DNA from: Guillardia theta CCMP2712
Taxonomy: Eukaryota; Protista; Cryptophyta
NCBI RefSeq assembly: GCF_000315625.1
Contig: NW_005434642.1
Span: 162,446-220,101 of the forward strand
Length of the DNA: 57,656 nt
Direction of reading: 5' to 3'
Made by a program: the position numbers and the translations under genes. Positions 21,821-24,079 of the stretch are shown in pieces. The notes below the pieces were generated by a model. The model did no database searches, had not been told where the DNA came from, and worked only from the letters and a program-made list of their open reading frames with translations. How positions within the stretch are numbered: position 1 is the stretch's first letter; each line of letters opens with the position of its first letter.

Positions 21821-24079
21821 ATGTCGGCTGTGCGCTTGTTGCCCATGGCGATGCTGGCGTGGCGAAGCTGCGCGTTCCATGTCGGCATGCGAACTTCCCT
21901 TCTCCCTGCCTCCTCCTGGTCCTCCTCCTTGTCCTCCTCCTGCTTCTCCTGTCCTGCTGTTTTGGCCTCCTTCATCTGGAAGCGAGGCGCCAGCAGGAAC
22001 TTGGTGTCAGCGAGGCTTGCCAGGAGCATGTCTGCCTCAGCGCAGGTACAGGCGCAGGCTTGCAAAACTGTATGCTCGGCCTCGAGCTCGTCAACAGCTC
22101 CGTCCTCGGACGAGTCTGTCCTGCTGGCTGACGACTGGAGGCTGGTGAAGGCTGTGGGAGACGGCTCCTGCTTCTTCCACTCCATCAGCGCGACGCTGCA
22201 GGGCGAGTACAAGCCGGAGGAGCTGCGGCGAGCAGCGAGCGAGCTTGTGATGCGCAAGGCGGAGGAGGAGATCAACGGAGCTACCGTGGCTCAGTGGATC
22301 GAGTGGGAGACAGGAATGACCCCGTCGGAGTACATGCAGGTGATGGCGCAGGACGGAGCCTGGGGAGGAGCCATCGAGCTACACCTGCTCGCGGACTTTC
22401 TGTCTGCGCAGATCAAAGTCTACGAGAGGTCGGGCAACGGCAGGTTCATGCTACAGCACGTCTTTGGCAGCTCCTCCTCCTCGTCTCCCTCCTCCTGCCG
22501 ATGTCTCCATGTCGTCTACGACGGCAGCCACTACGACGCTCTGATCCCGGCAAGGATGCAAGAGGCTGGCTCTAGAGGAGCTGAGCCCAATACGCCCCCA
22601 CCTGCTGACCGCCTTGTCCTGGGCGACCCCGCGAAGTTGAAGTCGCAAATCGCCGTCAGGAACAAGTTCGGCCAGTGCGTCCTGGGATACCCCGAGCCCA
22701 AGGGAGAGCAGCACACTGCTACTGTGATCTTCATGCATGGGCTGGGAGACTCGGGGTACGGCTGGGCTCCTGTGTCAGAGCAGCTCCAGATGCCTTGGAT
22801 CAAGTTCATGTTCCCGACTGCCCCCGCCCAGCCGGTGAGGAGGAGGAGGAGGAGGAGGAGGAAGGTGGCAAGAGGGTGGGGGGGAGAGTAAGGGAAGAGG
22901 GAAGGGATGCACTAGGAGTACCAGCTGTGGAGAGGTAGTAGGAAAGGCAAGTAATGTAGAGGAAGGGATGGGATGGAAAGTTGTAGAGGAGCTTGATTAT
23001 GAACATGTCTTCTCTTCCCTTTGCTTCTACAACTAGTCGAGTGATGGAAACTAAACAGGTGTCGCTCAACATGGGGATGGAGATGCCGGCTTGGTTCGAC
23101 ATTTACTCCCTTGACCCTGAGGACAAGAAGGAGGATGTGGAGGGGATGCTGGAGAGTGCCAAGTACGTTTCCGACTTGATTGAGAAAGAAATCCAGGTGA
23201 GGAGGAGGAGGAGGAGGAGGTGGTGGTGGTGGTGGTGGTAGTGGAGGAGGAGGAGGAGGAGGAGGAGGAGGAGGAAAAGGAGGAGGAGATGGGAGGAGAT
23301 GGGCTCTGTGGTAGAGGAGAAGAGGAAGCGCGGAGATGCAGGAGATAAGGAGTGAGTCGGGGAGAGGCAGAAGATGAAGAGGAGCAGGAGGAAGGTTGGC
23401 GATGACGATGGTGGTTTATCAGAAGGGAATTCCCCCCAACAGGATTGTTCTCGGAGGTTTCTCTCAAGGCGGCGCCATCGCGTACGCGACTTCCCTCATG
23501 CTCAGTGAGACGCCGCTGGCTGGCGTCTTGTGCCTGAGCACGTGGATCCCCCGCTTCGTGCGTCCTTCCCCTGCAGGTCAGAATGCGAGAGGAGGGAGGC
23601 AGGAGAAAATGTTGCGGGGCAGAGGAGGGACGGGGGGGAGGAAGGGATTAAAGTAGGCGAAAGGAAGGGGAGCAGGGAGCAGGAGGGCTCATACTGCTGC
23701 AGGGCTGAAGCAAGACTTCCTGGTATGCCATGGCGACAGCGATATGGTGGTGCAGTACGAGTGAGAGAAGGAGGAGAGGGAGGAGGGTCGTTGCTTTTGA
23801 CTGAATTGAGCAGTTGGGGGAGGCAGAGTTTCGAGAAGCTGGTGAGCGAAGGAGCCAAGGCTGAGTTCAAGACTTACAGGGTCCGATATGCTCCTCCTCC
23901 CTCTCTCTCCCTCTCTCTCCCTCCCTCCCTCATGCATTTCATCAGGGAATGGGCCACAGCCTTTGCGGGGAGGAGCTTCAAGGTTTGAGGTCTCCCTGCT
24001 GCTCTCATGTCATTGACGGGAATCGTCAGACATGCGAGACTTCCTGCTCAAACGTCTTCCTGGCACAGCAAAGCAGTAG
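21821..24079 (+). CDS. Fusion protein: bipartite presequence + OTU cysteine protease + acyl-protein thioesterase (APT1/LYPLA-like alpha/beta hydrolase)
   Basis: OTU motifs [17 protein letters not shown] and GSHYDAL lie in the same exon as the thioesterase start FMHGLGDSG...FPTAP. Later exons carry [24 protein letters not shown] and GMGHS. Stop TAG at 24077-24079. Confidence 0.88.

Follow-up and report, generated by a model that had tools for sequence, protein, structure and literature searches.

What kind of protein carries an enzyme that removes ubiquitin and an enzyme that removes lipid groups on a single chain, and to which compartment of an algal cell would it be sent? The question is raised by positions 21821 to 24079 (+) of a 57,656-nucleotide (nt) stretch of nuclear DNA from Guillardia theta CCMP2712 (contig NW_005434642.1, positions 162,446 to 220,101; hereafter the window). 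An initial annotation, made from the letters alone, had read this interval as an OTU deubiquitinase fused to an acyl-protein thioesterase (APT) behind a bipartite plastid-type presequence. The locus is an expressed gene with a single spliced mRNA; it encodes both domains with complete sets of catalytic residues, and both the fusion and the leader type are conserved among cryptophytes. The product of this trans-spliced nuclear gene, here termed OTU-APT, is quite probably a plastid-interior protein comprising a signal peptide, a phenylalanine-type transit peptide, an OTU isopeptidase, a flexible linker of ~45 residues, and an APT1/2-type thioesterase.

G. theta possesses a red-algal plastid surrounded by four membranes and a nucleomorph, and proteins enter red complex plastids through a ubiquitin-dependent translocon, the symbiont-specific endoplasmic reticulum (ER)-associated-degradation-like machinery (SELMA). 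The framework of signal peptide, transit peptide, Phe at position +1 and SELMA, which the initial annotation had presupposed in ignorance of the source organism, therefore applies to this locus.

Transcript evidence consisted of assembled contigs from runs of three studies (X1, X2, and X4), with one contig per run on the gene. The interval 21816-22827, which encodes the leader, the OTU domain, and the start of the hydrolase, is covered without a break in all three. Downstream pieces cover 23058-23190 and 23420-23570 in X1, X2, and X4 and 24028-24154 in X2. Three joints (23576>23703, 23760>23814, and 23982>24030) are recorded for X1, X2, and X4 alike, and the other three were derived from contig bookkeeping. 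The X2 contig is 1,608 nt long, the exact sum of 10 nt of spliced leader, 21816-22834, exons 2 to 6, and 24030-24154. No depth was found over introns or the upstream spacer, so the contigs represent spliced, RNA-derived molecules. Since they run continuously over exon 1 and the downstream exons, the fusion is contained in a single exon and a single mRNA; the initial annotation had argued for the single exon from the open frame.

The gene comprises seven exons and 505 codons (coding sequence of 1,518 nt; exons assembled by hand and checked by script), and all six introns are of the GT..AG type with CAG acceptors. The frame from the ATG at 21821 is open over 356 codons (21821-22891, +), and coding exon 1 (21821-22834, +; 338 amino acids [aa]) ends at a donor GT at 22835. 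This exon is a single open frame containing the signal-like segment, the transit-like region, the OTU domain, and the first 45 residues of the hydrolase. The exon 1 end near 22834 and the stop at 24079 had both been placed correctly by the initial annotation.

The 5' end of the mRNA is formed by spliced-leader trans-splicing. A pyrimidine-rich tract with a CAG acceptor occupies 21780-21817 (+; AG at 21816-21817), and the X2 and X4 contigs leave the genome match at 21816. Directly before this position, the X2 contig carries CGGCTGGTCA, a string absent from the window. With the genomic AG appended, CGGCTGGTCA equals the last 12 nt of the published 17-nt spliced leader of G. theta, CTCGGCGGCTGGTCAAG (Roy 2017, PMC5619915), of which only these 12 nt are visible. 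The genomic context of the acceptor, CTCCTGACAG followed by ATCATG, shows the pyrimidine tract and then CAG. The leader is thus found at the mRNA end, is not encoded upstream, and is joined at an AG behind a pyrimidine tract. Only 3 nt (ATC; 21818-21820, +) separate it from the start codon in both contig and gene model, and such very short 5' untranslated regions after the spliced leader are common in G. theta (PMC5619915). Neither the leader nor these 3 nt contain ATG, so that no AUG precedes the one at 21821 in the mature mRNA. The first 17 residues are shared by the transcriptome protein of Hanusia phi.

Alternative spliced-leader sites occur in hundreds of G. theta genes, and those within coding sequences are few (181 of 3,601 genes; PMC5619915). 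An internal trans-splice site giving separate OTU and APT mRNAs would have undone the fusion; the only leader junction observed precedes the first ATG by 3 nt and stands ahead of the whole frame, and no leader sequence was found at internal sites among the contig loose ends listed.

The public NCBI/JGI model of the locus, GUITHDRAFT_57831 (P0009; window 22691-24079), describes a smaller protein. It is 5' partial, 203 aa long, and begins at aa 291 of the full protein, so that it contains neither the leader nor the OTU domain and consists of the thioesterase only; the thioesterase portion of the query (14% coverage) matches it at 100% identity. The exon 3/4 junction of the model adds the residues ...SRRAHTAAG..., at odds with the joint 23576>23703 of the RNA contigs. 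Because the public model lacks the N-terminal 290 residues, the locus escaped earlier proteome-wide targeting predictions.

Introns 1 and 2 consist mostly of (GAG)n microsatellites (22837-22862, 9 copies, and 23199-23288, 30 copies). If mistranslated, these repeats stay in frame as poly-Arg or poly-Glu, and such tails occur in Hanusia and metagenome gene calls.

The leader was judged by rule-based features and by comparison with relatives rather than by matrix scoring. Residues 1 to 18 (21821-21874, +) resemble a signal peptide with a basic n-region (MSAVR), a 9-residue h-region (LLPMAMLAW; best Kyte-Doolittle [KD] 9-mer, 1.81), and a c-region (RSCA); by rules rather than a predictor, small-x-small precedes Phe19 in agreement with the -3/-1 rule, and 17 of the 18 residues are identical in Hanusia phi. 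Cleavage is predicted at SCA-FH, which would place Phe at +1. The following region (aa 19 to 100; 21875-22120, +) begins with this Phe, is transit peptide-like in composition, and is 49% identical to that of Hanusia. The 84 residues from Phe19 to aa 102 include 24 Ser, 12 Ala, and 5 Arg, with a net charge of +5, and the first acidic residue stands at aa 97, 79 positions past the cleavage site, leaving an acid-free stretch of ~80 residues.

Published criteria distinguish two classes of such leaders. According to ASAFind 2.0, three features set plastid leaders apart from periplastid leaders: Phe or a similar residue (Phe/Trp/Tyr/Leu) at +1, a near absence of acidic residues from +1 to +15, and no charge from +1 to +3. 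Known G. theta plastid leaders have the same appearance (...SSSA-FLVSPS and ...CASA-FMAPSP; PMC12136025 and its supplement). All nine full-length members of the OTU-APT family have a hydrophobic start, a small-x-small site followed by Phe, no acidic residue in positions +1 to +15, and no charged residue in positions +1 to +3. Signal cores are stronger in relatives, for example, CSALLLLAI (KD, 2.78) and LSTCIAAVV (KD, 2.37), with ASA-F-type sites. Outside the cleavage motif, the G. theta leader is only 18 to 28% identical to those of distant members, whereas the domains are 39 to 77% identical; conservation of the Phe site within so variable a leader indicates that it is kept by selection. The N terminus therefore has the features published for bipartite leaders of the stromal class, a reading supported by rules and comparison, and the signal-like segment ending SCA-FH and the Ser/Arg-rich region noted originally are both present, with the Phe and the acid-free start shared by the whole set of full-length members. 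Two members that seemed to lack a leader and hence to be cytosolic (P0003 and P0022) were rejected as such: their contigs encode an upstream Met and a full leader (...LAA-F and ...ASA-F), so the short forms are gene-calling artifacts.

The OTU cysteine protease domain (aa 113 to 238; 22157-22534, +) lies wholly in exon 1 and matches Pfam PF02338 over profile positions 2 to 128 of 128 (E value of 9.5e-14; 52.4 bits against a cutoff of 23.3). The catalytic boxes GDGSC (D114 and C117, the latter at 22169-22171) and HYD (H237 at 22529-22531 and D239 at 22535-22537) are intact, as first read from the translation, and are invariant or nearly so across the family. The nearest solved relatives are the OTU domains of nairoviruses (5e-9) and OTU1/YOD1, with which the Cys and His boxes align; all of these relatives are ubiquitin or ISG15 hydrolases. 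No USP domain was detected by Pfam in the exons searched. OTU enzymes usually require the ubiquitin fold, a linear tail being insufficient.

The remainder of the protein is an APT1/2-type hydrolase, separated from the OTU domain by a linker (approximately aa 246 to 293; 22556-22699, +) that is 27 to 31% identical to those of distant relatives. The hydrolase begins in exon 1 (aa 294 to 338, HGLGD...FPTAP; 22700-22834, +), where it matches PF02230 (Abhydrolase_2) at profile positions 9 to 54 (E value of 2.1e-9; 38 bits) and is 94% identical in Hanusia. Exon 2 (23059-23196, +; 46 codons) continues the profile at positions 56 to 99 (6e-10; 39.8 bits), is represented by contig pieces, and shares 34 of 46 residues with the full-length relative P0184. 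Exon 3 (23423-23576, +) covers positions 100 to 141 (1.6e-10; 41.6 bits), ends at the joint 23576>23703 found in three runs, and encodes the nucleophile Ser398 in GFSQGG (codon 23462-23464). The profile is thus colinear over exons 1 to 3, without a gap in profile positions and above the cutoff of 23.

Exon 4 (23703-23760, +) is bounded by joints present in X1, X2, and X4, 23576>23703 and 23760>23814, both of the GT..AG type, and its translation provides Asp449 in HGDSD (codon 23741-23743). Exon 5 (23814-23880, +) follows from the joint 23760>23814, with its 3' end placed from the length of the X2 contig, which the gene model matches exactly. Exon 6 (23946-23982, +) ends at the joint 23982>24030 (listed as 23980>24028, with the cut moved by +2), and its translation contains His481 in GMGHS (codon 23955-23957). 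Exon 7 (24030-24079, +) closes the frame with TAG at 24077-24079, as given by contigs and translation, and the 3' untranslated region extends at least to 24154 (24080-24154, +), the end of the X2 contig. The hydrolase, begun in exon 1 and finished in exons 2 to 7, thus has a complete Ser-Asp-His triad (S398, D449, and H481), as the initial annotation had reported.

Whole-protein comparisons were made with the full-length relatives P0184 and P0168, and the G. theta exons were searched separately. The hydrolase of P0184 is closest to human APT2 (2e-54) and APT1 (5e-52), with 42 to 46% identity and TM scores of 0.82 to 0.85, and its triad motifs align with those of APT2; matches to bacterial carboxylesterases (1e-35 to 1e-38), SOBER1 (2e-31), and LYPLAL1 (2e-22) are weaker. 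The G. theta exon pieces are colinear on P0184 at 50 to 74% identity. In the AlphaFold model of P0184, the leader is disordered except for the signal helix, and two folded domains are joined by a low-confidence linker (predicted local distance difference test [pLDDT] score of <50 over the stretch matching the G. theta linker), with no indication of a fixed interdomain arrangement. The OTU part of the model scores ~68 to 90, mostly 80 to 90, and a fold search with the whole model returned thioesterase matches only. Look-alikes of P0002 in the ESM Atlas were exclusively free-standing thioesterase clusters and were uninformative on the fusion.

The architecture is rare. With a full-length relative as the query, ~10 representatives among 1.84e9 cluster representatives matched across both domains, the rest being free-standing thioesterases, and word-based searches returned the same small set plus a named 498-aa protein of Baffinella frigidus with both domains. 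The search for proteins combining OTU and Abhydrolase_2 domains proposed by the initial annotation thus recovered a small family. A tree rooted with OTU-only relatives places the fusion proteins in a single clade (support of 100/100), in which Guillardia and Hanusia are sister to all other fusion members, including Baffinella. Every named fusion member is a cryptophyte (Guillardia, Hanusia, and Baffinella), and the searches yielded no two-domain protein from a named diatom, haptophyte, or other proteome. The named members bracket the family. The members known from metagenomes and transcriptomes are probably cryptophytes also, and the OTU-APT family as a whole is probably restricted to this group. 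A ketoacyl synthase encoded beside one of these members (contig L029) has its best named match in Rhodomonas salina (55%, versus 39% for Phaeomonas), which is no more than suggestive of a cryptophyte. No cryptophyte spliced leader was found on the contigs of relatives, which gave no taxonomic hint. An intron after FPTAP.QP is common to G. theta and two distant relatives. The G. theta genome contains ~10 other Abhydrolase_2 loci and approximately six other OTU loci, and both domains occur together at this locus only.

Gene structure and surroundings vary within the family. The relative P0183 (L029; ENA contig NODE_66958, 23 kb) is intronless and lies among nine genes in 13 kb, whereas the G. 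theta gene has six introns. In two relatives, a RING/DUF1232 gene lies downstream of OTU-APT on the opposite strand (L019:1833-2423 and L020:3487-3738). Synteny with this neighbor was dropped from consideration since no DUF1232 match was found anywhere in G. theta.

On the preferred reading, the signal peptide would direct the growing polypeptide into the lumen of the ER around the plastid, and its removal would uncover Phe19. The stromal-class transit peptide would then cross the periplastid membrane through SELMA and the two inner envelope membranes through the translocons of the outer and inner chloroplast envelope (TOC/TIC) and would be cut off in the plastid interior. There, both modules would work as independent hydrolases on one chain, the OTU module cleaving peptide or isopeptide bonds after a ubiquitin-type ...RGG tail and the APT module cleaving fatty-acyl thioesters or lyso-lipid esters. 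Location, both activities, and their substrates are predicted, and the protein may have a role in processing imported proteins. The constant pairing of an OTU domain with an APT1/2-type domain suggests common substrates for the two erasing activities.

Several observations weigh against this reading. In G. theta, the signal segment has a short hydrophobic core of 9 residues (KD, 1.81), with Arg at -4. The contigs leave room for minor internally trans-spliced isoforms, and a 5' leader of 20 nt could permit leaky scanning to Met9, Met11, or Met23. Localization and enzyme activity of the protein are predictions only. To our knowledge, no ubiquitin system exists in the stroma of any alga, so that a stromal OTU enzyme would have no obvious substrate. 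Deubiquitination tied to import would be expected in the periplastid space, and proteins of that space have no Phe at +1 (PMC12136025). Because deubiquitination is expected in one compartment while the leader is of the class for the other, a periplastid or dual location is the main rival.

According to that rival, the same protein acts in the periplastid compartment, alone or in addition to the stroma, as a deubiquitinase of the SELMA route and/or a protease for periplastid leaders ending in LRGG. All plastid-bound proteins pass through this compartment, dual plastid/periplastid targeting is known from diatoms (PMC12136025), and a 2025 survey reported the proposed SELMA deubiquitinase ptDUP to be absent from Cryptophyta and proposed an alternative enzyme, while the named OTU-APT members are all cryptophytes and bracket the tree. 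Moreover, LRLRGG occurs in two published G. theta leaders without Phe at +1, XP_005839318.1 and gt_85468 RRM1, the latter GFP localized to the periplastid space (PMC12136025 supplements). Nothing found here directly links the OTU-APT enzyme to such leaders, and the dependence of most OTU enzymes on a ubiquitin fold, beyond a linear tail, speaks against a leader protease. The Phe at +1 and the acid-free start in nine of nine members are, by published rules, marks of stromal leaders that periplastid leaders do not have, and a periplastid role is improbable. A diatom periplastid thioredoxin leader also contains ...SLRGG (PMC12136025 supplements).

If instead the Phe were coincidental, the N terminus could be an ER signal peptide alone, for a secreted or endomembrane protein, or a mitochondrial presequence, since the G. 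theta core is short and flanked by Arg and the next region is Ser/Arg rich and resembles a mitochondrial presequence. The plainly hydrophobic cores and ASA-F-type sites of relatives, the retention of Phe at +1 throughout despite 18 to 28% leader identity, and 55 to 85 acid-free, positively charged residues past the signal peptide, which would be atypical of secreted proteins, make this the least probable of the alternatives. Hardly more likely is that the two enzymes are made or used apart, through internal trans-splicing, an internal start, or proteolysis of the linker after import, the fusion being a delivery device. The hundreds of genes with alternative spliced-leader sites (PMC5619915) and the poorly conserved linker, predicted to be disordered, would allow it, but the junction is spanned by one contig per run in three studies with no leader at the internal loose ends listed, leader sites inside coding sequences are few (PMC5619915), and the fusion is retained family-wide. 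The combination of a stromal-class leader, no known stromal ubiquitin system, and a thioester hydrolase partner would also be compatible with a nonubiquitin plastid substrate of the OTU module, for example, a Gly-Gly-ended sulfur carrier of ubiquitin fold or an acyl-lysine, with the thioesterase clearing acyl-thioester adducts at the site of fatty acid synthesis. This proposal, which follows from reasoning only, is disfavored by the canonical OTU Cys and His boxes and by the exclusively ubiquitin- or ISG15-directed activity of the nearest solved relatives, and we regard it as unlikely. A plastid-interior OTU-APT protein thus remains the favored explanation.

The two parts of OTU-APT belong to known, ordinary families, and their combination is an undescribed domain architecture; the literature search found neither the fusion nor GUITHDRAFT_57831 described, nor any plastid OTU enzyme or thioesterase from a cryptophyte. 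Human APT1 and APT2 (LYPLA1 and LYPLA2) have the same fold as the C-terminal part and the same triad in GxSxG, HGD.D, and H motifs (42 to 46% identity, via P0184). They are, however, free-standing proteins of ~230 aa in the cytosol or mitochondria, whereas the G. theta domain makes up the C-terminal half of a longer chain (505 aa), preceded by an OTU domain and a leader of the complex-plastid type. The N-terminal part shares the Pfam OTU domain and aligned D-G-x-C and H-x-D boxes with deubiquitinases such as the nairovirus L protein and yeast Otu1/human YOD1. The relationship is distant (best E value of 5e-9), and the G. theta protein is fused to a thioesterase and lacks their UBX, zinc finger, or polymerase partners. 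The Baffinella frigidus protein (P0182, 498 aa) is orthologous and arranges leader, OTU, and APT in the same order, but it was automatically named after one domain as a "Phospholipase/Carboxylesterase-domain-containing protein," its C-terminal exons appear to be mismodeled, with the His motif missing, and its OTU part is 43% identical.

There is precedent for an OTU enzyme in a plastid of the red lineage. TgOTU7 of Toxoplasma gondii is an apicoplast-localized OTU deubiquitinase required for plastid homeostasis (PMC10795397). It resembles the G. theta protein in enzyme family and type of organelle, by description rather than by sequence and with the G. theta location being a prediction, and differs in lacking a thioesterase domain and in belonging to an apicomplexan rather than a cryptophyte (PMC10795397).

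A second comparison is with ptDUP, the proposed SELMA deubiquitinase of Phaeodactylum, a USP-type enzyme (a relative of Ubp15 and UBP12-13) with a predicted periplastid location. The 2025 phylogenetic survey found ptDUP in haptophytes, stramenopiles, and alveolates. Like ptDUP, OTU-APT would be a nucleus-encoded deubiquitinase with a bipartite leader tied to import into a red complex plastid, as far as its predicted activity and route allow the comparison. Unlike ptDUP, which is of the USP type and predicted to be periplastid, it is of the OTU type, has a stromal-class Phe, and has so far been found in cryptophytes only. With an OTU and no USP domain, it can be at most a functional analogue of ptDUP and not a member of that group. 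Very tentatively, and with a likelihood that we consider low, OTU-APT could be the alternative enzyme that replaces the missing ptDUP, stripping ubiquitin from SELMA preproteins and/or cutting LRGG leaders while the thioesterase removes a lipid-type mark from the same substrates or from the machinery. The gene is a concrete, clonable candidate for the role of SELMA deubiquitinase in cryptophytes. If the protein is truly stromal, as the Phe predicts, it would point to ubiquitin-like or acyl-mark chemistry inside the plastid, which would be unexpected.

The OTU-APT gene lies between two expressed genes on the opposite strand. The divergent neighbor upstream (20529-21206, -) has introns of 47 to 58 nt, and its 5' end is ~600 nt from the OTU-APT trans-splice acceptor; one of its junctions varies between runs (20636>20690 versus 20636>20695). 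The spacer upstream of the acceptor contains CT-rich tandem repeats at 21487-21639 and 21221-21328 without RNA depth, one with a 38/75-nt unit (4 or 2 copies; 87 to 91% match) and another with a 9/18-nt unit. The downstream gene (24193-24800, -) has an intron of 245 nt (24348-24592), and its contigs begin <80 nt past the last covered base of OTU-APT at 24154.

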